64,000 bases of DNA from Takakia lepidozioides. Its lineage: Eukaryota; Plantae; Bryophyta. Position numbers and translations under genes: made by a program. Below are positions 7,800-55,889 of the stretch, one piece after another. The notes under the pieces were generated by a model. It ran no database searches, was not told the origin of the DNA, and saw only the letters and a program-made list of their open reading frames with translations. Location of the stretch: assembly GCA_030704615.1 (NCBI GenBank), contig JAKLZA010000023.1, forward strand, positions 1 through 64,000. The letters run 5' to 3'. Position 1 is the stretch's first letter. Each line of letters opens with the position of its first letter.

Positions 7800-9460
7800 G
7801 GGTAAGTGCAGACTACACTAGCTCAAAAGCGGCAGATGTGCCCTCCACTAAAAGTCCATAAGAAAAAATTAATTATATTTTAATTAAGGATATTGTTCAA
7901 ATATATTTTTATCTTCATAGGTAATTGTATACTAATCATATTTAGTAAATGGTCTCACCCCAAATATTTGAGATATTTTTATTATAATATTTTAAAAATA
8001 CTAATAGCTATTTATTATTATCTGTAGTTTATGAAAATTTTCCATATAACAATAAGCTCCTAGAGACAATAACAATATATATATTCTTAGCAAAGATCTC
8101 CACCCAAATATGAAATTTTCAAAATGCTATGGATAAATCGTCATTTTGGGGGTTTTTTGGATTAAAACGTCCATAGTGTCTTGATAGATGGATGGAATTG
8201 TTCACAAATTTGTGTCTATTCCAGTGTTGGGCGGTTCTTGCATTTGTGAAGGAACCTTCGGTTCCGGTTCCAAAATTATTTCAAGAGTTCCGGATCCGGT
8301 TCCGGTTTTTTTTTTATTGAGCCGGTTCCGGTCCGGTTCCGGATCCAACTTTTTAAACATGGGGGCGGTTCCGGTTACCGGTTAGTTGCTGATAAAAACC
8401 ATCGGTTCCGGTTAGGTTCCGGTTCTATTTTAAAAATATATTTGTTTAATTTAATTAGATTTAAAATATTTTATCAGTCCGGTAGATTAAATAGCAGTGT
8501 ATTCACATATTTGAACTAAAATCCAACGATTTTGTTAGTTTTCACTAACACAAAAAAAAAAAACAAACAAAAATACTCTAAATAAACTGGTAGAAGAAAA
8601 TGGGTAAAATTTTATGGGTTGAAAGTACTATTCAACTACCTGGCAAGTATTGGCATCTTCAAACATTTTATTAATGAACTTAGCCAGGATATCATGGAGC
8701 TGGAGATTGAACCCAAGATCTCATGGCGCTGAAGCATTGAACATAGAATCTCATGGCCTTCAAGCATTGAACCCAGGATCTCAGGAGCTTAAGAGCATTA
8801 AATAAGTTTTTCCCTGGGCCCACCAGCCCCACCAAGAGGTCAAGAACCAAGAACCGGACTTAGAAGCGCTTTGGTAGGTACTGGAGACATTTAGGGCTAC
8901 AGCCCACGGGTGACCGGAACCGGAACCGGAACCGCTTTGGAGCTAGAACCGCCGGTTCCCACACAAGCTGGAACCGCCGGTTCCAGTTCCCACACAATCC
9001 CCAATGAGCGGTTCCGGTTCCGGTTCTGCACAGGCGGGTCCGGTTCCGGTCCGGTTCCACATAACTGGAACCGGAACCGGCGGTTACCCGGGGCCCAGGC
9101 GGGTAACCGCCCAACACTGGTCCCTATTCAAACATTGTGTATCTAGTTGTAAAGTCCATATATGAATTGGTTGTGCAACAAATAGGGTTTTCAGATGGAA
9201 TTTGGGACAATAGATGGACTGTGACATTCCATTGGAATTCCCTACAAAAGTCCATAGCTTCATGAGATTTCATCCAAATTCCAAAATAATTGTACCCACA
9301 TGTATATATGGTAAGTGGCTATCCCATTCTAAGTCCATTTGCTATGAATATATAACTTATGTGTATAGGGTGAAGAATAATATAACAAGCAGTCAGTCAA
9401 AAACTGCAAATTGTCCTCAAATTGTAGTCCAAACTGAGCCACTCTAGTCTGCATCTACCC
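7800..9460. mobile_element. Second related TIR element, GGG..CCC termini, 4-bp TSD TCTG
   Basis: Left end GGGTAAGTGCAGACTACACTAGCTC; right end reverse-complemented GGGTAGATGCAGACTAGAGTGGCTC. TCTG lies at 7796-7799 and 9461-9464. Removal restores RNase H (REVISSGKIIFCYCRTDDMAADILTKPL). Confidence 0.88.
8222..9119. mobile_element. hAT-type MITE nested in the second 4-bp-TSD element
   Basis: 15-bp TIR CAGTGTTGGGCGGTT/AACCGCCCAACACTG. Flanks are GTCTATTC and GTCCCTATTC (an 8-bp TSD with a homopolymer indel). Dense subterminal GGTTCC/GGAACC repeats at both ends. Confidence 0.85.
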
Positions 9461-41759: not shown

Positions 41760-42931
41760 TAATGTGTTTATTGTATCATTTGTTTCCAATGTTATTATGA
41801 TGTTGTACTTTGTTTACAGTATTCCGAGTCATTAATATCTAGCAACTATAAACATTTACATTAACGTAATACCCAAAATAAGAGGATCAATTGCATTCGC
41901 TTTACATTATACAATATTAGGGTCTTTAACCCTTAAGGGCCCAAGAGACCCAATTCAGGTTTTGAGGAAGTAGATTTTTTCTTTACTTTTCGCATATCTT
42001 AATATTTTTCAATGGTTTCAATTACAATTAATATTCTGGCAACATGGCCCACATTCTCATATTGAAAACAGTACACTCTAATAAATTCTCTGACCTATAG
42101 ATTTTCTAAAAAACGCAGGGTCATAATATTGGAGCATGGGGTGGGGCCACGCAGAGTTGACCATCTGCGTGGCGAGATATAATTGGCACATGTTTAGCCG
42201 TCAAATTGCCATATATGCATGCCGGCGGTGGACTATACATCTATTCACCCGGCATGGAGGTTGAAAGTCTACGTGGCCCTTCCACAGTCAGAAACCTCTA
42301 CTGGAGTAGGTAATTTGCAGGCATGTGGGCAGGAAAGTAACTTGGCCCATTCGGGGGCCCACATTTGTAGATTGTACCATTGGATCTAGTTTTTTTCTCT
42401 AGGCTCACTATTGTATTACATATCACACCTTCACCAGAGTGATTGAGTGAAACATCATTTTATCAAGTAGTGGATTTCTTGTGGCCTCTCATTTTAAGAT
42501 AATAGGGTCTTCAATGGGCACGTGCGATGTGGCCGGTGGGCCCCGCGCACGGACCCAGCCCCGCCCGCCCCGCCCGCGCCCCGTCCGCCGCGCGGCCAGT
42601 CCCCCGCCCATGAGTCCGCTGCCCCCAGTCTGCCAGTCCGCCAGTCTGCCAGTCCGCCAGTCCGCTGCCCAGCAGTCTGCCAGTCCGCCAGTCCGCTGGC
42701 CAGTCCCCTGCCATCCAGTCCGCTGACGGCGCAGGATCGCCACCGTCCATTCCCATAACCCATCCGAGCCCTCCATTTTTAGGGCTGCAATTCAAACCTG
42801 CATCCCTGCCGCCTGCCACTTGCCAGCAGCCGCGAACGTGCGCACTGTTCTCCTGGCACGTTGTCGATCGTGTCCTGTACTGCGGCGCGTTTCTTGCATG
42901 TTCAGAAGCGTGTCTTTGTACTGTATAGGGC

Positions 42932-45900
42932 ATGGACGTGGAAGCAAAACCCGATGATATACTGATCACGGAAAGCCCGCTTATACGGCCTCTTCGACAA
43001 TGTTTGCAAACAGCAAAACCAGGACCCTTCAACAGGAAGGATCTCCATTGGAAGAGTGAGACGCAATATGGGTTTATGGGTGTGCGAGTGAATGTTGAAA
43101 AGGCCTGCATACCTTGGGATAGAGTTGGTGACTTCGTCCTGGGAGAGGAGAGTTTGGAGGACTACCCCACTCAGTTTTGGGTGAATGTCCATTCTAAAGT
43201 GGAACCCGGCTCGCGAAAAGCACCCAGAGCCAACACATTTCTGTCCAGTATTATGTGTGCACCATCCTCAGTCCTTTTGACGTTTCATTGCATGTCTGTT
43301 GCCATTTTTTGTTTCACGAGTTCTCTGATTTTATGCTTCCTCAAGTCGTTGGATATCGATTTTAGAATTTTCTGTCCAGGTATCAATGCTGCTACGGTCC
43401 TGATGACAAGCGCACCAACAAGGCAATAGTGGAGGATCCAAAACAGAAGCGTGGAGGACCTCTTGTGGGTGCTGGAACATCTTGCCCTCATAAAGGCCCA
43501 AGGAGAAAGAAGTCGGAGTATGGAGAGTCTTACAAACGTGGTTGCCAATGCTGTTTCAAGGTCCAGCAATGCTATCTCGCCCCTGACATCTGTGTCCTCA
43601 CGTACTACAACAACATGGAGCATACAGATGCGCAAGGGAAACCCTCGCATGGGAAGTCCGCAGAGTTCAGGAACACCCGCCACGCCTATGCACCACACAT
43701 TAGCGAGGAATTGAAAGCCTGGGTCGTCGAGTGTTTGTGCCGAGGCCTGTCGGTCGCCCAAATCATGATGGAGCATAAAGAGCACGTGATGAACAACACC
43801 GGCTTGGGCGATGCATGGACCCGATGATTTCTTGTTGGAGCAAGATGTTCGCAACCTTGCCGAGAAACGTGCGTGGCAAACCTTCAAAAAGCACGCCGAT
43901 GATGGAGAGTGTGCGCATGTGGAGAGACCAGAATCCTGCGTCCGTTTTTTTCTATCAAGAGGAGAAATTAGAGCCAACATTCGAGCATTTTGATGGAGAT
44001 TTGACATTCACTATTGGCATACAGACTCCGTGGCAGAAACGACGAATGCTGGAACTAGGACATGACCGTATCGTTGCATGTGATGCAACCTTTGGGACAA
44101 ATCATGACAAGGTACTATTCGAACGATTCCATGGACTTGTACGAGCATGATAGCATAGTACCATGCAACATTCACATAAAATTTGGTGTGCTGACCCTTT
44201 CTGTATGTTTTCATGTGTACGTTGCGGAAGACCGAGGGGCAGACCCATTGTGAACCGCTGCAGACCTCATCACTCTTATGAAGTCTTTCTCGTGCAGAAC
44301 TGAGCGGAATTTGCATGCTCTGACCATCTTACATTGTGCATTCCAACAGTTCCCATTGTACACGTTTGGTCTTCGACGAGTGGTTGAACGGTATACCAGT
44401 TGCCTATATCCTATCCGCGAGGAATCGGACAAGAGACCTGGTTCCGTGGATGAGAGCCTTGCGCGATTCACTCCTCGCAGATTTGCCGAGCTGGCGACCC
44501 AATGCCTTCATTGTGGACGATGCCGAAGCAGAAATCAACGCTATTCGGTAAGTCTGTTGGTCCACAGCACCGGTCCATTGTCGAGGTCCACTGCAGCAGT
44601 CCATTGCTACAGTCCACTGGCAGACTCTGTGGCGAAACCCGATGGCAGTTCGCTGGGCAAATCCACTGGTAGTCCGCTGTCAAGTCCGTCATCAGTCCCC
44701 TGGCAAGTCCGCTGGCAGTCCCCGCAAGTCCGCTCGGCAGTCCGCCAAAGCAGCAGTCCCTGGGTCGGCCGTCCGCTGCCAAGTCCACTCGGCAGTCCCG
44801 GCAGTCCCAATGGGGCAGTCCGCTGATGCAGTCCGCTGCCCCAGTCCTAGCTAGGGGAAGTCTGGGTAGTCCAATGGGGGGGTTTATTCCAAGCAGCCAC
44901 ATCAACGTCATGGATTGTACTGTCCACTGGGCGAGTCCAGTGGCTGCCCGCTGATACAGGTCGCTGTTACAGTCACACTCCAGCAAGTCCCCATTGCAGT
45001 CGATCCAAGACTCTAATGTGTACCATGTGTGTTGTGCAGAATTGTTTTTGAAGGAGTACTCATTTTCCTCTGCCTTTGGCATGTCCGCAAGGCATGGGTT
45101 GAAGCAATCATGCAAAAACGAAGGATCGGGACCGCTGTAAACTGTAAAGAAGGATATGGGAGACCTCATGTACTGTAGAGGGGGACCACGCAACGAGAAA
45201 AGAGCGCTTCGGTGGGTTGCAAGGAGAATCCGTCGTATGAGGTCAAAATACCGAAAAGGACATGAATTTTTTTGACTATATCGAACAGTACTGGAAGCCC
45301 AAAATAGCAATGTGGTGTACAGCAGCCCGCCATGTCCCTCATGCGAGCCAAGAACAAACGCAAGCATTGAGGCATACCATGGAAATCTGAAGGCAAGACT
45401 TGCCATAGGAAAGGCAAGATGAGTGGTCGTAGAGTGGACTGGCTTATATGGGAACTCACTGGCCGTGTGCTAACACACTACTGGTACGCAATCCATTTGA
45501 AGACCCACGGGTTCATAAGAAATGACAAACACGAAAAGTACATATCCAGTTCTATACTTGCGGCACGAGACATTCCTGCTGAGAGTGTTACTCTTCCCTT
45601 GGGTCCTGGTGAACCAGCCTACGTTCTCAGCAGCAACCACCCCGGCACACAACATACATTGTTTACAATCCTGATTGCGATTGGGGTTGTTGCACGTGCC
45701 CATGGGCAATGAAGGAAACTTATGCAAGCATCAGGTCCGTGTCCTGAAGATGCTTCACCCTGACCTGCAGGATGGCCTCTTGTGCGCTTGTGGCACGGCG
45801 CTGGAACCATTCATGGAGGATTACCTAACTTGCTCTTGGGCAATGGTGCCGGCGGCAACGACGAATCCAATCAGTTCATGGAAAGACATCCTCCGGATGC

Positions 45901-46333
45901 ACCTCTGGAGGTCTCAGCCTCAATGGAACAAGAATTCGCGGACATACTTCGCATTGTAGGTGATGACAAATACCTGGAGGCACATGCCCGATCTGCTCTT
46001 CATATGTGCAGAGGGCAGCTCGTTGATATCCTGGCGAAAAGTGCGGCTGGAATGTTGCACCCTGCGGCAGCGAAGGCTTTCCGTCCTCTGAACGACAACA
46101 ACAACATGTCTCTGAAAAGGAGACGAGATTTCGTGGAGGCCTGGAAAACCCGGCCTAGGGTTTTGCGGAGAACCAGCAAGAGGGTGTCTGCACCTGCACC
46201 TGCAGCACATATATACTCGAAAATTCGCAAGGTTTCAGGTCGTGTAGATGTCACGAAGAAGACAATAAAGTCTGCAATGCTCGAAAAGAGACAAGGTTTC
46301 ACGTCGTGTAGGTGTCACGAGAAGACAATATAA
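42932..46333 (+). CDS. MULE DDE transposase with SWIM finger, four exons (introns 43255-43379, 44112-44349, 44548-45039)
   Basis: YQCCYGPDD..KRGCQCCF..H; ACDATFGTN (D1); FIVDDAEAE (D2); CLWHVRKAW (CxxH); TNASIEAYHGNLK (E); CTC..LCKH (SWIM). Several indels. Confidence 0.9.
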
Positions 46334-46405
46334 GTCTGCAATTCCAAGAGACAAGGTTTCACGTCGTGTAGGTGTCACGAAGAAGACAATATAAGTCTGC
46401 AATTC
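46229..46405 (+). repeat. Three ~58-bp tandem repeats at the transposase 3' end
   Basis: AAGGTTTCA(G/C)GTCGTGTAG(A/G)TGTCACGA..AAGACAAT..AAGTCTGCAAT occurs three times. Confidence 0.9.
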
Positions 46406-46972
46406 CTCTGGTAGCATTGTCCCTTTCTGAAATACAAGTCCGCAATGGACTAATGCACAGTCTCCCACGGACTCACGCAGTCTCCCAACAGAGTCACAGT
46501 CAACAGACTGCGAGCGCCAGTAAGCCAGTCTGCTGGTCAGTCTGCTGCCCACTCCAAAAGTCTGCTCACCACACTTCCACCTCATCCCTGCAACTCTTCA
46601 GACTAAGTCTCAAGCAGACTCATCCACAACAACAGACTCAAAATGGACAGGCTCCAGTGGACTACCTCCCTAACGACTCATGCCAATCCAGCGTCCCAGC
46701 GGACTCATGGACATGGTGCCTACCAGACTAGGTACCAGACCCACCAGTCCTAGCCTCGGCAGCGTACTGCTCGCACATTCAAGCTCAGCAGACTCGGGTG
46801 CATAGTGCATGGAAAAATTGACACCATTGTGTCCATTGAGTTTAGTGACAACATTACAAAACATGCCAGCACCCACAAGTACACAAAAGTGCTCATCACC
46901 ACTGGAATAGTAAGCGAAAAGACTCGCATTTTTATTTCGGTACATAGACTTCACAGGACAAGTACATCATAC

Positions 46973-49900
46973 TCATGAGAGCAGTTTCTCTACATTGTCC
47001 AACCCCCGCACGATATACTGGGCACACTGCATTCGCTGCCCAAGTGCAAACTTGAAAGTAAACCAGTCCTTCGTGAAAGGTGTTCCTCTCTCTGGCTTTG
47101 CAGTCTTGGAGACATTTGCTCTGACTTTTACCCACTCATAAAACACTTGAATGAATGACATGACGTAAAAGCCACACTCCCAGCTGAATGGTTGCTGGGG
47201 CACATCAGGCGCGTGGAACTGAAATGCTTGGACAATCTCATGCCACTCTGGTGAGTCCATCGAGTACCCTAAGCACTCAGCATGAAGCTTCCGAATCCAC
47301 CCTAGAACAAAGGGACATTTATGCGAGTCCCTGATAGAGTTCAGGTGAGTGTAACAGCCCTTGCGGAGGTCGATGATACAAACACTCCAGTGCCCCCTGC
47401 AATGGTATCAAACAACATGGCGTCATTGCACACAATCATGATGGGCAGACTCAGCAGACTGACACTCAGCAGACCCACTCAGCAGACTCAATCTTCAAAC
47501 CCAGTCCACTGCACAAATACAGAGGTCAACTTAATCGCTCAGAGTCAAGACGACACTGAAACCAGACTATGACTCAGGAGACAGTCTCAGCAGACTCGGA
47601 AGAGTTCTTACTCGTCCCCAATTGGCACCAAAATGAAATCGCACTCTTTCAAGTCCTTGCCCAGTCGTTCAGTGCTGAGGCAACCTTTCAAGACCTCCAG
47701 AAGGCTTTCATGTTGCCCCACCCCCAATGACTTCAACACCGTCCACGTCGACGTTGGAAGAACAACAATAGTGTTGGTGAACGCAGCCTCAACCGACTTC
47801 TCATAGAATCGACACCACAGCTCAGGAGTCTATCTGTGCACTCCGACTCAACCTTCTGGAGCGCCTTTATGTCATCCGGCGACAGTCCGCATTCAAACCG
47901 TGGGTCCCCTTCAAAAAACATCAGCATGGAATTACCCGCCTTCACGTGCAGAGCATGTGCTTTGCCAAACCGAGCACCCATCCTGCACAGAGCAGACCAT
48001 CCTTCGGGAAGCCTCATGTACTGAACAGACTGACGTCAACATGGTACCAAACACTCTACAGGCTGAACAATTCATCAGACTGACAAGACTAACCACAACA
48101 GACAATGATGAAACCAGCAGCAGACTGACCAGCGTGCAGACTGACCACAACAGAGCGCAAAGCACTTAACGACAAAGACAGACGAGGAGACTGAGCACAG
48201 TACTCACCTGTGCTGCTCCAGGAAACGACCCACATCTTTGTCCATGTCCAAGGCCAGCTTGCGGTTCTTGTTCATAAAGACGCCAGACTTTTTCTTCGCC
48301 GGTCTCTTGGTACTCGGACCCTCCTCGACCTCCTCAGCATGGTCCACGACAGTCCGCTTCTTGGCTTTGCCTCTCCCCTGGGAAGCAGGGACAGCTGTAG
48401 GCGGGCTGGATAGAGCAGACAAACGCAGCGCTGCCGCCCTACTTCGCAACAGAGGCTGGTCAGCAGGTTTGTTTACACTTGCTGGACCTGTCTTTGCAGC
48501 TTCGTGGGTCGCATGCGTAGAACTGACCCGCGCATCGGGGGGCGTGCTCACCCCCACACCTTTTCTTGGTTGTCGATCCCACGTTTGCAGCATGGGCGGA
48601 AGATGTCATGTCCTCAGAAGTAGACAGTCTGCCGACGAGGGACGAACATCCTGTGAGGATACCGAGCAAAATGACGAATTAGCCCAATTTCACAATGTGC
48701 TAAAACATAAACAACAGTGCTGAAGAGGAAATGGACACAACCTGCCCAAGGGGTGAGGGAGCAGACTCCATGTAATCCAGCGCTATACCAGACGGTGTCT
48801 GCGCGCATGTGGTTCCTTGTCAGTGTGCCTGCCAGCATGTTCAGTCTGTTGCTCAATGTGGGCAGTCTGCTCGGCCGCCGGTTCTTCGTCAGTCCTTTCG
48901 TCTGTGAACTGTGCAGTCTGCTGGCAACTCTGCGGTTCAGTCTCTTCCTCAATGTGGGCAATGTGCTCGGTGGCAGGTTGGTCGTCAGTCAGTCCCCTCT
49001 GTGAAGTGTGCAGTGTGTGGTCAGGCCGTGCAGTCTGAACTGTGCAGTCAGAGCTGAGCTGTGCAGTCTGCCGCTCCGAGCCATCCTGGTCAGTCTTCCA
49101 TCTGTGACCTGTGCAGTCTGCTGGTTAGTCTGCGGTTCAGTCTGCTCATCAATGAAGACAGTATGCTGCCCCGCCACAGGTTGCTCGGCAGTCCTTCCAT
49201 GTGTCCACTGTTCAGTGTGCTGGTCAGTCTGGTGGACAGCCGGCTGGGTGTTCGGATCTCCATGGACTTGGGAAACATCAAGAACATGTATGGAAGACCC
49301 ACCGGCAATTGCTTCCTCAGACTCTTCTGTAAGATCTATGATACGGTTTTGCGTTCCCAGATTGAGTTCGGTCATCACGTAAGACTCATCTATGGCTTTC
49401 GCCACTGAGCGCACGAAAACGGGACTAAGCTGGAAGGTCATAGAAGGCAGGCCACGGGGAGCTGGATAAGAATGCTTTACCGGTGACCTGATGACGTCGT
49501 CAGTGAATGTGCCTGGGGGAAAAGTGGACTCGGTCAAAACACTCATACTGGCAGATCCAAAAACATGTTGTTGGGAACTCAGCAGAAATTCGTCCACAGG
49601 GTCCCGGTGAGGCCAGTGCATCCGAGTCTGTTGCACAATCAGGGAACAGACTGGCTGTTAGTCTCCTGGATAGTCTGCTCGGCCATCTGCTGAGTGGGTT
49701 CGCAGCACAGTCTGCTGAGGGGCGCTGGCAGTCTGCTGATGAGGGGCAATCTGCTGGCTGGATTCGTCGGCTGTACAGTTGCTGAGGGGCAGTCTGGTGG
49801 CCATGTTCGCTGGTCTGCTGCACAGTCGGCTGAGGGGCAGTCTGTTGGCCGGTCTCTGTCTCCGGTCTGCTGCAAAGTCTGCAAAGTTCGCTCCGCTCAG

Positions 49901-52684
49901 TACTGTTTACATACTGAGTATGTGTGTGCGGGGCAGTCTGCTGGGAGTGATCCGGCCTATTACCCGGGACGGTCTGGTGCACATGCTCGGTCTCCAGCAC
50001 TTGGGCAGTCTGCCCACATGTGTCGTGGGGAATATGTTGTTCGACATTCTTGTGGCCAGTCTGCTGGACAGTCTCCCGAACTCCTTGTAAAGCCAGGACA
50101 AGGTCCCTTGCACCTCTGGCAAAAGAGTCGAAAGCAGCCTGCACTTGCTTGTCTCCCAGATCAACTCGCCCTGCAACACATGTTTATGCAAATGTGAACT
50201 TGTAAAAAAGTTGGCAAAAGAAATTGAGCTGAAACACGAAAGTTGCCCATAACATTTTACCTTCCAAGAGATTTCCGACGAGGCCAATGTCCTTGATTTG
50301 CCGGCACAGGCATGCTCCATCGAGATGAGCAATGGCGCCGATGCGGTCTTCAGTTGGGATCCCACACCACAGGACTTTGAAGACATTGGGATTCTGCAAA
50401 ACAATGTCGAATACTGCTCGCTCCATCACCAATGCAAACCAGTGCAATGCGTCATCCACCACAAACTTCTGTGAATGGTCTGTTCCATGGAGTAAGTCCA
50501 TCCTCAAACTATGCAGATCCTTCATCAACTTGTTGTATGAGCGGAAATTGCCAAATTGCATCCATCTGTGTTGTAGGAAGGAAGCTGCCATGCGCTCAAA
50601 GTCCTCCTCAGTCAATCCGAACAAGTGCTTTCTTCGCACCCCAAAGGTTGGATGTGCCATAGGCATATGTCTGAGGTTCAGGGTCATCCATGAGAATCAG
50701 CTGCACAAGTAGAGGCGGCGCATTTTGGTCGCTTGTGGCTTCAATGGCAACAGCAGAGGCGGCTTCTAGAACATGGTTGGCTTCCTCAATAGAAAACTCC
50801 ATGGAATAATAAAAAGGGTACAAATGACCACCGGCGGTCCGCAACAATCCGGTGGAGCTCATTATGCCAATCCAAATGGGGATTAATTTCTCCACCCTAA
50901 GCCGGGGAAGTGTGAGGTCTTCAGCTCCGGGTCGAATTACCGGTGATGGCGATCGCCAAACTGCAAAAAAGCGTCGTGCTATGTGAGAGAAAGGCAGTCT
51001 GCTGGTCAGTCTGCTGGTCCGCAGTCTGTTGGATGACAGGACTTCCCATTGGCATGGGCTGCATGATGGGCTCCTGGAGAGGAGTCTGCAGGATGACAGG
51101 CTGCTCGTTGGGACTGCTCGTTGGAGTCTGCTGGATGACAGGCTGCTGAACGGGAGTCTGCTGGATGACGGCCTGCTGAATGGGAGTCTGCTGGATGGCA
51201 GACTCGGCTGTCCCAGACGCATCCCCCCCCCGACGCGTCTTGAATATGTAATGCCGCTATAGCAGCAGATGACCCAGGATACTTCAAATATGTACTCTCG
51301 CACGCGGTCCACTTCCGCACGCACTGCAGTCGCTTGTAAAGGAGCATCATTGCTAGGTATCCGCCAAGCCTGAATGGCCCTACGAATAGAAACACGTTCA
51401 TCCTGGTACACGGCAGAGAACTTGGACGTCAGGACATGGACGTGGACTCTATATTCACCTCATGCAGCGGACTGGACTCACAGACCAGCAGACTGTAACG
51501 TGCGTACGTAGGGTGGAGGCAACTAGTAGACTATACCAGTGGACTGGACAGCGGACTGACAAACGGACTCAGTAAGTAATGCAGCGATATAAAACAGACT
51601 AACTGACGAGCGGAGTGAGCCAGCGGACTGAGGAGAGAACGCAGCGGACTGACCAGACTGAATAGGCAACGTGACCCCGATGATGGACTCAAAAGCACAG
51701 AGAACAGACTGGGCGGTCAGACTGACCATTACCTCCTCTACTTCATCATCGTCATCTTCATCTTCAAAGCTGTTCAACCAGTTCTGTTCCGCCTGTCGGA
51801 ATGAATGTGCGTAGCAGACCTGACTGGGCAACTCTGTAGAAATAACGGAAGAAGTCTGGATCCCCAATTGGGGGCACTCTGGTGGGAAAAGCCCAAAGTC
51901 AACGAGGCGCAATGTGCCAGGGCAGACTGGCCCTTCAGTGCTCTGTTGAGTTTTTGGTTTTGACCCTAAACCGATGGCATGGGTCGCGATATTTGTGTGA
52001 GTCTGCTGCCGAGTCTGGTCAGGCAAGTCAATGTCCACTGGACTTGTCACCCCTTCCAGGCCCTGAGCAGATTCACTTTCAGTATCAGTACTGATGGGTG
52101 GGTCTGCGCCCAGGACGGGGTTCAGTCTGTTGCGTGGATTTTGCCCTTGCCTCGCGAGCAGACCTTGCAGCTTCTCCTTTTTTTGCCTCTCCTTTTTGGG
52201 CCCCATCACTCAGTTTACGTTTTCTGGGAGCGTCCGGCGTTCCCTGCACTTGCAAATCCTCCATTGACGGGCCACCACAATGGACGCCATACCGTGCGCG
52301 CACTTCGTCTAATTCCAAAGTGCGGGGTCAAGCACTGATCCGCGCAAGCGCATTGTGGCCTCTTTGACAATCGACATTTCTTTCAGTATCGGCCAAGGCT
52401 TGAAATCCCGTGGAATCATTGCAACAGTCTCCTTGCAACCCGTGTCAACACAATGCCGATTTAGTTGGATTTTGTCCTTGATAACCTCTTCACAGAAGGG
52501 ACAGAAGAGCTTGTCCTTCTGCCAATTCGAGTTTTTGGGCTTCCGGGCGCGGAGGTCTACAAATGCTTCCACTATTTATGATCAAACTCGTCTGGTGAGT
52601 ACCAGTACCTTCGCTCCTTCTTCAGTCTGGTTTGGTGCACAAAATCCACCAGTCCGCTCCACCCTTTTCACAAGCATCCTCCAT
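46973..52684 (-). CDS. MULE-borne multi-exon gene: N-terminal C2H2-like Zn finger, acidic tract, helical (DUF1985/PMD-like) region, low-complexity linker and C-terminal Ulp1/C48 peptidase
   Basis: LFCPFCEEVIKDKIQLNRHC; EDEDDDDEVEE; GKMLWATFVF. Splicing 47612 to about 47396 gives DFILVPIGDE|GHWSVCIIDLRKGCYTHLNS...VPQQPFSWECGFYVMSFI. Start is uncertain. Confidence 0.78.
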
Positions 52685-55218
52685 CGCTGCAGAATGAAAC
52701 GAAGGTGCAAGGACAATGAGAGCGACAGATAGAAGTCCTATGAAAAGACTCACCCTAAGCAAGAAGAGGACACAGAATGGAATGGAAACACCGCAGCAAG
52801 TGAGAACCTCACCGAGCGATGAACTTCGAGTTGTTACGAAGGCGAGTGTTTGCGACGCTTCGCGGCTCACCGCGACTCTCTCCACACCTGGGGAAGAACG
52901 GTCGTCTTTCGTTACGGTGATGGAAACGCAAAGAGGAAAACAAAACAGTGCAAAACAGTGCGAAGAAACAGGCGCGAAGAGAATGGAGTCGATCGCACAG
53001 GGAACATGAGAAGAAAGTAGAAGTAGAAGGGGGAAAGCGGGCATGGCACTGCCAACGTGCGCGATTTCACAGGCGCCAACTATCCGCCGTCATCGCATTG
53101 AATACGTCCACCGAACGAACGCATCGTACTAAATTCATCCACGGTCCTCGCAAGTGCAGCAGACTCATTTCCCATCGGGCCGAGAGTCCACCGGACCGCC
53201 AGTCCCGGACTATTCGCTTTGCTGAGGCGAAGCGGCTTCATATTGGAGGCACTTCCCTGCCAGCGGAATGAAGACAAAAGAGAGTAAGGGGAGAAAGGAA
53301 AGTCGAACACACCCATTGCGAACAGACTCGCGGCACAACAGACTGATGCATGCACAGTCCAACAGACTGATATCCATAGAGGAGAACTGTCCAGCAGACG
53401 GACGTTTCGGCAGACTGGCGGGAGAACAAGCCAAAAGACTGACCGGAGGGAAAATAAGAAGTCAAACAGACTTAGTGCAACAGACTTCCGACACAACAGA
53501 CTGACAAATTCACAAGTGCGACAGACTGATATCCAACAGACGGACTTCCAGCAGACCGCCTCCAAACTGACTGTTATGCACGCGATAAGGGAATATCCGG
53601 AGCACTGACGGGCCAGCGGACCCACTGTGAACAGACTCGCGACACAACGGACCTCAAACATCCACGCGCATTTGCAGATGCAATTGTCTCAGCCTGGTCC
53701 GTCTCCTGGCAAATGCGACAATGTACGATTCTGCACCTACTCCCGTCGTGGCTCAGACATCTGCATTCAGCAGGTGCGTGTGGATGTTTGAGGACCTTAC
53801 GACTGGATGGTGTTCCTTGACGACTCGAATTGCTTTTTTGTGCTGCCATCCCTTATATAATACCATGTGGATCCATCACAAAGCTGGGTTTCTTCAGATT
53901 CTCCACCCTTTTCCACAACTTATGCACGACGGATGCAAGCCGCTATACTTGGTCACATAAACAGTCCCATCGTCCGATACGAAATCTGCAATACACGCCC
54001 CCATGTGCATACGCTTCCACCATTTTCGCGCCCATGTTACCCATGGGTTCCTTTAACGAACTAAACTTGTGAAGGCTCTCATGAGGGATGCAGTATGAAG
54101 GGGCTAAACGTATCATGACGGATCACAAGCAGAGGACGTTATCGACGACAGATGTCCGCATTTTCCATATTTATGACATAGAACCAAACCATAAAACGAA
54201 GGTTCCCGAAAGCACAACAAGAAGGCAAAAATAGTGGAAGCATATGCACGATGGTGGCTGTAGTGCCAGACAGTCTTCTCATGTTCAAGCACACGCTTCA
54301 TCATCATCATGAACATCGCGCGCAAAAGAGGAACAGTCGCGTGTGGAAACGCCTACCGCAACATCGGACAACAAACAGCCGTCAAAAGAGAGCGCCATTT
54401 GGTGGGAAGATCATTGCCATTTTCGCAGCCCTAAAAATGGAGGGCTCGGATGGGTTATGGGAATGGACGGTGGCGATCCTGCGGACTGGATGGCGACTGG
54501 CTGACTGGACTACCGGACTGGCTGGCAGCTGCTAGGCAGCGGACTGGCCAGCAATGGACTGGCAGACTGGAGGGCCGCGGACTCATGGGCGGGGGAATTG
54601 GCCGCGCGGCGGCGGGGGCGCGGGCGCGATTGCTGCAGCCGCGCCGCGGCGCGGCTAGGCGATCGCGCGAAGCGGAGGGCGGGGTGCTGGGGAGCCGGGC
54701 GTCCGTGCGCGGGGCCCACCGGCCACATCGCACGTGCCCATTGAAGACCCTATTATCTTAAAATGAGAGGCTTTCTTGTGAGGGCTGACTTTGAATTAAT
54801 AAGCTATGGAGGACATTTTGCCCTCACCTCAAACACATACAAAAGACCCTAATAAAAGAAAAAGTTGTTTGATTTGAAACTTCCACAGTAGTTGGCTATG
54901 ACAACATACCACATTTCTATATGTGGGAGACAGGAGCAGGAAAAATCCACCCATTACCTAAATAGTTTGGTCAAAGTTCAAATTCTATACTTTACAAAAT
55001 CCCAAAAAACAAAACCCTCTCACTAAAACACTAAAATCTCTCATGATTTATAGTGAATGTTTCCACAATTTGATGAGTAGATGTATATGGTAGACAAGAT
55101 AAACTTGGTAAGGTTCATTTTTTTATGTATCAGGGTAGGTGTGTAGCCTCAGTTAACTAACTAGAGGTTACTTTTTTTAGGGATGAAATTTGGCCAATGG
55201 CGGGCCCTTAAGGGTTAA

Positions 55219-55660
55219 GGGCGGGTGGACACCTTGGCTTGTCATTTGTAGACTAGATCCTGCAGAGTACCCTGTAGAGATGATCCTCCAAAGTGGATCC
55301 TCCATAGTGGATCCACAAAGTGGACCCGGCAGAGTGGAGGTCCAACGGGTGGACCCTCTAGAGTGGACCAGGTGGGCGGAGGCAGCCTGTGACTGCGGAT
55401 GACCCCGTGGGTCCGTAATGGCCGGGCCATAGGCAATAATAATATACAACCAATATATTAGGGTCTTTAAGGGTTGACACCTTGGCTTGTTACTTGTAAA
55501 GTGGACCCTGCAGAGTACCCTCTAAAGATGATTCTGCAGAGTGGACCCTCAAGAGAGGACCCGATGAGTGGGTGCCTCGACTTGTGACCTACAGAATGGA
55601 CCCTCTAGAGTGGACCTATAAAGTGGACCCGATGAGTGACCCTCCATATTGGACTATGTG
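55219..55660. repeat. Tandem duplication (~250-bp unit) built of GTGGACCC/GTGGATCC motifs; first copy split by the piggyBac-like insertion
   Basis: GACACCTTGGCTTGT..CCTGCAGAGTACCCT occurs at about 55228 and 55476. ATATTAGGGTCTTTAA occurs at about 41914 and 55455. Confidence 0.85.
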
Positions 55661-55889
55661 AGTATATTCAATGTCATTTTTAATTAATAAATTTATCAAT
55701 TATCAGGTATCTAGCAGGCAAAAACCTTGTAAAGTCCGTATGTAGAATACACATATATAATTATATAGAATATTTATACAATACTAATATCACAAATAGA
55801 ATACTCATACCAGAGCAAATGAGGAAGATGGTGGGGGAGTATTGCTACCTAGGACATGCTCTGTAGTTAAGAGATTCTTTATATCCCCT

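Follow-up and report, generated by a model that had tools for sequence, protein, structure and literature searches.

We describe here a Mutator-type element of 12.3 kb at positions 42484-54771 of the window analysed, the first 64 kb of contig JAKLZA010000023.1 of Takakia lepidozioides, to which all coordinates below refer. It is a structurally complete, MuDR-like two-gene Mutator element, with a transposase gene on the + strand and a zinc-finger/Ulp1 gene on the - strand in convergent order, and it is filled with one short word, the core of which, AGTCYG, it contains 114 times. We propose, with a confidence somewhat short of an even chance, that this word may be a family-private binding site of an element-encoded protein, either the transposase or the finger-Ulp1 protein, which acts on transcription or silencing.

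A preliminary description of the window had reported that CAGTCYG is densely repeated in the element, and the counts bear this out: 63 of the 71 matches in the window lie within 42484-54771, with 18 +/- 4 in window shuffles. The core AGTCYG, of which the element has 114 copies where its own dinucleotide shuffles have 14.2 +/- 3.6, reaches 9.3 per kb in the element and 0.64 per kb elsewhere (33 in the remaining 51.7 kb). When all 6- to 9-mers were counted without bias in the element and in the rest of the window, a check suggested in that description, the same word came first: AGTCTG heads the ranking without any prior (82 in the element, 24 outside), and AGTCTGCTG and AGTCCGCTG occur 21 and 14 times, respectively, in the element and never outside it. 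A similarly dominant word is found in none of the window's other 12-kb blocks, whose top 6-mers are generic A/T-rich ones with at most 32 copies. The privacy of the word was judged against the 64-kb window and four distant loci.

Alignment of all 114 cores lengthens the word to C-AGTC-Y-G-C-T-G, the full 10-bp form being [C/G]AGTC[T/C]G[C/T]TG. The exact 10-mer CAGTCTGCTG is found 13 times in the element and not at all outside it. Among its single-change neighbours, variation is concentrated at position 1 (C 13, G 8), position 6 (T 13, C 10) and position 8 (C 13, T 8), while the remaining seven positions, with 0-3 variants each, are nearly invariant. Because C-to-T changes at positions 1 and 5 are missing from these neighbours and the variation is position-specific, it is not plain deamination; such positional constraint looks like that of a binding site. 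The seven invariant and three tolerant positions also provide ready probes and mutant controls for binding assays.

The cores form 18 clusters, mostly single-orientation blocks, and 99 of the 114 lie outside the terminal inverted repeats (TIRs), as far as 6 kb from either end. The main arrays, made up of T-type (AGTCTG) and C-type (AGTCCG, which contains a CpG) cores, are as follows.

42613-42722, + strand: left-TIR array; 10 cores, all +, 7 of them C-type, with an 8-bp period
44551-44864, + strand: transposase-intron array; 10 cores, 9 in +, 7 C-type, with periods of 13, 23 and 26
46269..46794, no strand assigned: intergenic array between the convergent 3' ends; 15 cores in both orientations
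47446-47596, - strand: accessory-intron array; 5 cores in one orientation, inside the intron 47397-47611
within 48742..50138, - strand: linker cores; 22, all T-type, irregularly spaced and not a simple tandem array
50996-51204, - strand: array in a 283-codon frame of the accessory gene; 8 T-type cores with periods of 12, 15 and 30
51468-51723, - strand: accessory-intron array; 10 cores, half of them C-type and half T-type, that share one orientation
53160..53637, no strand assigned: array lying upstream of the accessory gene, its 12 cores all - and 10 of them T-type
54482-54583, - strand: right-TIR array; 5 cores, 4 of them C-type

All the sites at which the preliminary description had placed the motif do hold arrays: the TIRs, the transposase intron, the spacer, the introns and linker of the accessory gene, and 53160-53637. 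The motif is also, as it had claimed, scarce in the flanks (0.64 cores per kb) and in conserved coding blocks (2.4 per kb), as against 18-23 per kb in TIRs, introns and linker. The word is not confined to non-coding DNA, since 30 of the 114 cores, roughly one in four, lie in transcribed, probably exonic low-complexity sequence. The C-type predominates in and near the TIRs and the T-type in the internal arrays. The intergenic array adjoins a 64-bp x 2.9 tandem repeat (46228-46406), and its low end overlaps the 3' end of the transposase gene. Tandem Repeats Finder (TRF) periods of 8, 13, 16, 23 and 31 were obtained for the TIR and intron arrays and of 12, 15 and 30 for those within open frames. 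When ten arrays are compared, consensus identity is 0.81 across the 10-mer versus 0.29 in the 15 nt on each side, and the CTG extension, which was not used in selecting the sites, recurs in 8 of the 10; their spacers and periods are unlike, and the word alone is common to them. It is because the word is enriched, position-constrained and the one thing shared by ten arrays that we read it as a putative binding site. We further count in favour of this reading that arrays are placed within each TIR, upstream of either gene, in contig-supported introns and between the genes, and that both candidate readers are encoded, the accessory gene being found in apparently spliced form.

The ends of the element are those of a Mutator insertion, with long TIRs and a 9-bp target site duplication (TSD), both features of the Mutator superfamily (in which the TSD is 9-11 bp).

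42475..42483, no strand: left TSD, TTTCTTGTG, 9 bp, by direct reading the same as 54772-54780
42484..42788, + strand: left TIR of ~300 bp; perfect 71 nt, array, perfect 59 nt
54425..54771, - strand: right TIR; inner 59 nt, array 54482-54583, terminal 71 nt
54772..54780, no strand: right TSD, TTTCTTGTG

The terminal arms (42484-42554 and 54701-54771) are complementary at 100% over 71 nt, and an inner pair (42730-42788 and 54425-54483) is perfect over 59 nt; a variable, G+C-rich segment with word arrays lies between these blocks, and similarity between the arms extends over ~300 bp in all. No second copy of this Mutator-like element (MULE) is present in the 64-kb window. The MuDR element of maize likewise has two convergent genes (mudrA and mudrB), each starting beside a long TIR, and a 9-bp TSD. 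The mudrB gene is not known to have an Ulp1 domain or a zinc finger, nor MuDR to be filled with one short word. The Takakia element is thus like MuDR in its convergent transposase and accessory genes, long TIRs and 9-bp TSD, and unlike it in the Ulp1 domain and zinc finger of its accessory gene and in its single dense word.

The transposase gene was delineated mainly by homology blocks, and protein searches, here and for the accessory gene, were run exon by exon.

42932..46333, + strand: MULE/SWIM-type transposase gene, with a TAA stop at 46331-46333
43028-43255, + strand: homology block (tblastn map)
43375-43824, + strand: homology block with a GCM/WRKY-like finger (KRGCQCCFKV at 43534)
43823-43900, + strand: homology block (tblastn map)
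43905-44120, + strand: first D block (VACDATFGTN at 44073)
44327-44548, + strand: second D block (FIVDDAEAE at 44507)
44549..45243, + strand: intron, inferred from a homology gap, containing a word array
45244-45369, + strand: homology block (tblastn map)
45354-45410, + strand: E block (NASIEAYH at 45357)
45416-45667, + strand: homology block (tblastn map)
45655-45752, + strand: SWIM block (GCCTCPWA ... NLCKHQV)
about 45860-46330, + strand: homology block (tblastn map)

A search of a representative library with the exon at 43366-43824 returned 158 proteins; the top match, at 6.7e-17, is 40% identical, and no close relative was found in the protein collections. Pfam was blank at the exon level for the transposase exons; the full-length relatives carry the MULE domain PF10551 (6e-16, 1e-6) together with the ZSWIM1-3 RNaseH-like domain. 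These relatives align across 43028-46306, with the D, D and E blocks of a MULE-type DDE transposase all found, and a SWIM-type CxCxnCxH finger (45685-45752), aligned to the relatives and split by a frame change, follows the catalytic domain. As assembled, the gene has at least six frame changes (near 43820, 43902, 45353, 45412, 45660 and 45708), so that the uninterrupted transposase frame of an autonomous copy is lacking. These changes leave no gap in the query and hence no room for introns; no nonsense codons were seen inside the conserved blocks.

The accessory gene was resolved with contigs from three public runs of one organism, which were aligned to 46900-52899.

46973..52685, - strand: accessory gene, zinc finger and Ulp1 protease, the upper limit being that of contig cover
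46976..47396, - strand: last exon, which encodes the C-terminal half of the Ulp1 domain (Peptidase_C48, PF02902)
47397..47611, - strand: GT..AG intron (contig joint)
47612..48035, - strand: N-terminal half of the Ulp1 domain as judged by visual inspection (LSPDDIKALQ ..., CDFILVPIG); the frame changes near 47830
48207..48605, - strand: basic exon resembling a nuclear localization signal (GKAKKRT ... KRPAKKK), by reading of the sequence alone
48742..50138, - strand: Q/T-rich low-complexity linker, ~1.3-1.4 kb, transcribed (contig cover without joints)
50139..50260, - strand: GT..AG intron (contig joint), with no cores inside
50262..50696, - strand: middle exon, fold unassigned; a marginal model (predicted local distance difference test score, pLDDT, 62) shows a helical bundle and beta strands
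50611..51402, - strand: the 283-codon open frame 50611-51459 from the acceptor 51402 on, 264 codons
51403..51732, - strand: GT..AG intron (contig joint)
52312..52572, - strand: zinc-finger exon; basic stretch RARKPKNSNWQKDK, then C-x2-C-x12-H-x5-C (FCPFCEEVIKDKIQLNRHCVDTGC)

The contigs span 46949-52685, and their joints, with CT..AC ends, mark GT..AG introns of the - strand at 47397-47611, 50139-50260 and 51403-51732. The exon-joined contigs are most simply spliced mRNA of the family, though intron-less DNA copies would look alike. The donor at 48742 is also used by an alternative joint to 47396, which gives an alternative intron 47397-48741, and both the linker and the array at 50996-51204 are under contig cover without joints. 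Peptidase_C48 (PF02902) was recovered with an E value of 3.2e-12 over 46976-47407 on the - strand, so that this domain is encoded between the TIRs as in Kaonashi-type MULEs. Structure matches of the last exon include SENP2 (1tgz; 3e-4) and yeast Ulp1 (7e-4), and the protease His (47390-47392), oxyanion Gln and Cys (47174-47176) are present in it; the codon AAC at 47339-47341 is a single G-to-A step away from GAC. The exon with the N-terminal half has no Pfam match at the exon level. An acidic exon lies between the 283-codon frame and the finger exon. The finger has weak support as a C2H2-type one from Atlas look-alikes and from sub-threshold Pfam matches to zf-Di19 and zf-C2H2; its exon was modelled, with low confidence (single-sequence, pLDDT 43), with a beta-beta-alpha segment, and its PDB neighbours, ZFP57, GAGA factor and CTCF, are non-significant. 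The middle exon has no match in Pfam, the PDB or the Atlas, where its look-alikes offered nothing usable, and a PDB fold search with its low-confidence model gave none at E <= 0.001. Neither the finger exon nor the last Ulp1 exon brought up a homologue in word-based searches, the reach of which is limited for such short queries, and an exact look-up of ten products of open reading frames found none in the protein collection. The gene as assembled contains an in-frame stop at 48989-48991 and shifts frame at least three times, close to 47830, in the stretch between 50696 and 50611, and within the linker.

The same contigs indicate how copies of the family differ. Array length varies between copies, as seen in a go-back joint (49770->49736), in a 99-nt skip (48638-48736) and in the 30-bp array, where a loose end fits with its register shifted by 30 nt. 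In contigs of one run, X1, 60 of the 91 changes relative to the window are C>T (28) or G>A (32), with only 2 T>C and 3 A>G; hence the window copy looks like one that has kept the C/G state, other copies appearing deaminated. The observed/expected ratio of CpG is 0.72 in the element versus 0.51 in the surrounding 51.7 kb, that is, the element is less CpG-depleted. The one-directional changes and higher CpG fit a young copy in a family under methylation-driven decay. One contig of run X1, 1,079 nt long, matches 52109-52685 and has beyond this ~480 nt that match nothing in the window; the expressed copy either differs upstream of the finger exon or splices to an exon missing here.

The preliminary description had called the element an intact two-gene MULE. 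Both gene types, the TIRs and the TSD are present, but the copy is not intact as assembled, the frames of both genes being broken in the ways given above. Against the window, the nearest short-read contigs show substitutions and gaps in ratios of 1:4, 1:2, 1:1 and 5:5; since such ratios are unusual for real divergence, the frame breaks could be errors of the assembly consensus. The indel contexts are mixed, only some being in homopolymer runs. The breaks could be real decay or assembly error, and we side with neither.

Taking these observations together, we suggest the following scenario for the favoured reading of the word as a family-private binding site. Both genes would be transcribed inward from the ~300-bp TIRs, and a family-encoded, sequence-specific DNA-binding protein would recognize the 10-bp word, the arrays of which may lengthen and shorten through slippage during replication. 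Clustered sites would load this protein onto the promoter regions near the two TIRs, onto the introns and onto the 3' region, for which the arrays would be kept. The loaded protein could then hold copies of its own family, and no others, transcriptionally open by anti-silencing or trans-activation, and a tethered Ulp1 domain would remove SUMO from silencing factors. Two candidate readers present themselves as about equal, namely the N-terminal GCM/WRKY-type finger of the transposase and the basic region plus C2HC finger of the Ulp1 protein. The binding of the word, demethylation and any link to SUMO are here purely what we infer.

Several observations weigh against this reading. A lone C2HC finger normally reads ~3 bp, and the word has 10. 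No copy of the word lies in the terminal 71 nt of the TIR, the usual binding place of Mutator transposases. In the last Ulp1 exon, the residue aligned to the Asp of the SENP2 triad (His+17) is Asn, encoded by AAC at 47339-47341. The word, being CAG/CTG-rich, is slippage-prone by itself. Finally, as neither gene has a continuous frame as assembled, this copy may make no protein.

One alternative, which we regard as unlikely, is that the word is a subterminal transposase site required in transposition for end synapsis, as in Ac/Ds and En/Spm, and that slippage or an internal duplication of TIR sequence gave rise to the internal arrays as side products that play no part in silencing. The two TIRs do hold the arrays that are densest and richest in C-type cores (130-240 bp from the ends), the left-TIR array has an inverted look-alike at 53387-53421, and the transposase carries the GCM/WRKY-like finger in its N-terminal part. 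However, 99 cores lie outside the TIRs, at distances of up to 6 kb, and the internal arrays have spacers and periods of their own, with the word still constrained in them. An origin of the internal arrays as copies of TIR sequence was considered separately and rejected, given the flank identity of 0.29.

Equally doubtful in our estimate is that the arrays are neutral micro- or minisatellites, a CAG/CTG-rich seed having slipped and spread in a young element with no reader protein. Many cores do fall within TRF-detected tandem repeats, array length differs between copies, and other elements in the window are word-rich too (GGAACC at 8251-9073 and AGTGGAYCC at 55230-55700). Neutral decay would nevertheless be expected to affect every position, whereas seven of ten are near invariant and the same positions vary in every array. 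In addition, at least ten separate arrays of unrelated spacers share one 10-mer, and the 22 linker cores are irregularly spaced.

A third possibility places the function of the word on the host side, its CHG-dense repeats feeding small RNA and RNA-directed or CMT-type methylation and so marking the family for silencing; we consider this distinctly improbable. The T-type word has two CHG sites per strand, CWG reaches an observed/expected ratio of 1.63 within the element as against 1.31 elsewhere in the window, and the excess of C>T and G>A differences between copies is a signature of methylated cytosine. Tandem repeats are targets of RNA-directed DNA methylation (RdDM). The target regions of VANC, the anti-silencing protein of Arabidopsis VANDAL elements, overlap those of RdDM (Sasaki 2023, PMC10398659). 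On the other hand, a purely harmful feature is unlikely to be kept with positional constraint in a recent insertion with perfect TIRs. This alternative is also compatible with the favoured reading, since in VANDALs both occur on the same repeats. Very improbable, finally, is that the repeats encode the Q/T-rich peptide linker of the accessory protein, the non-coding copies being incidental: the array periods in transcribed frames (12, 15, 30) are multiples of three and most cores in 49120-50063 read QQT, but those at 50996-51204 read S-R-L and the majority lie in TIRs, introns and intergenic DNA. As the cores stand in different codon phases, the repeated unit is a DNA word and not a peptide, and the peptide repeat is rejected on this ground.

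The closest parallel to the favoured reading, that of a private word bound by an element-encoded protein, is the VANC system of Arabidopsis, which the preliminary description had also invoked. VANC21 binds YAGTATTAY, a word private to VANDAL21 that forms dense tandem arrays of a single orientation in its non-coding parts, namely upstream regions and introns, comes in C and T types and differs in copy number from one copy to another (Hosaka 2017, PMC5735166). VANDAL21 (Hiun; Fu 2013) is, like the present element, a member of the Mutator superfamily with accessory gene(s), and the likeness extends to the privacy of the word, its dense single-orientation blocks in non-coding parts, tandem arrays of varying units, C- and T-type variants and array lengths that differ between copies. 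Every sequence-level property of VANC21 targets reported in PMC5735166 is found in the element, so that the cis side matches. The two systems part company in other respects. No exon of the accessory gene has a Pfam match at E <= 1 to DUF1985 or DUF287, the plant-mobile-domain-like region of VANC proteins, and the accessory protein shows no detectable similarity to VANC; in the PDB, exon queries gave no sequence match to VANC at E <= 10, with the fold-search copy reaching April 2026 and the presence of 9LNK in the copies used unconfirmed. VANC, reportedly solved (VANC21, 9LNK) and structurally like MAIN, has been called dicot-specific (PMC13547354), whereas the present host is not a dicot, and VANDALs are non-TIR MULEs according to a review (PMC13317346), whereas the element here has perfect long TIRs. 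Further, the word here, unlike that of VANDAL21, is G+C-rich, built of CHG sites and present in coding sequence as well, and binding and hypomethylation are reported for VANC21. Thus, of the earlier proposal of a VANC-like system, the cis layout and an Ulp1 domain joined to a putative DNA-binding module, as in KIU genes, remain, while the lack of VANC similarity in the accessory exons and the perfect TIRs go against it; judged by its sequence, the element is an analogue of the VANC system and not a member of that family.

As to the protease, some Arabidopsis VANC genes (KIU) are fused to Ulp1 and said to act on their own family, and the capture of Ulp1 by MULEs has been dated to about the monocot/eudicot split (PMC13317346). 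The Kaonashi/KIU MULEs (Hoen 2006; van Leeuwen 2007; Sasaki 2022, via PMC13317346) resemble the present element in having Ulp1 (C48) in an accessory gene. They differ in that the domain here follows a basic region, a C2HC finger and unassigned domains in place of a VANC module, and in the Asn at the triad Asp position of this copy. An Ulp1 MULE in a bryophyte would amount to an independent or much older capture of Ulp1. A parallel for the other candidate reader comes from AtMu1c, the transposase of which, acting alone, binds its own TIRs, causes hypomethylation of its family and switches it on (Sasaki et al. 2026, bioRxiv 10.64898/2026.08.24.746577). Both it and Spm TnpA are element-encoded binders of own-family motifs, either a transposase or a protein derived from one, that lower methylation and activate transcription (same preprint). 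By analogy, the transposase could be the reader of the word in Takakia, with the difference that AtMu1c binding peaks at the TIRs only and the word here runs throughout the element, the terminal 71 nt excepted.

Sequence-specific anti-silencing has so far been documented for Arabidopsis VANDAL/VANC only and, lately, for Spm TnpA and the AtMu1c transposase. If the favoured reading is true, a family from a non-seed plant would have the same cis architecture with an unrelated protein, which would point to a convergent, general strategy of a private word and its own reader, and the long-unexplained Ulp1 domains of MULEs would gain a testable role as tethered deSUMOylases. A bolder extension, which we consider rather improbable, is that bryophyte MULEs have a VANC-independent system of self-recognition, in which the C2HC finger would tether an Ulp1 deSUMOylase to the private word and strip SUMO there from the silencing machinery, so keeping its own family alone active, other families having diverged to other words (candidates are TGTAACCC and YAGACC).

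Four loci with relatives of the transposase (33-37% identity) were compared as negative controls only. All four are without an Ulp1 gene and without a dominant word, AGTCYG being at background level, and in the one locus searched for TIRs (L001) none flank the gene. Full-length relatives of 825 and 874 aa were found at L001 (GCA_046195345.1 CM100794.1) and L004 (GCA_016081115.2 CM071927.1), respectively, in A/T-rich genomes. The four look like domesticated or decayed SWIM/MULE-derived genes.

The surroundings of the element are themselves repetitive. The MULE is nested in an element of ~1 kb with CCCTTAAGGGCCC and GGGCCCTTAAGGG ends and flanking TTAA (41926-42483 plus 54781-55215), which in turn sits within a further repeat. 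An uninterrupted host copy, in which attagggtctttaa runs directly into gggttgacacc..., is present 250 bp downstream at 55445-55490, an empty-site-like neighbour of the nested insertion. The host repeat of the nested elements (55230-55700) contains AGTGGA(C/T)CC ~10x per 500 bp. The sole other strongly clustered 6-mer of the window is GGAACC/GGTTCC, which forms an array of ~20 copies in 0.8 kb at 8251-9073.

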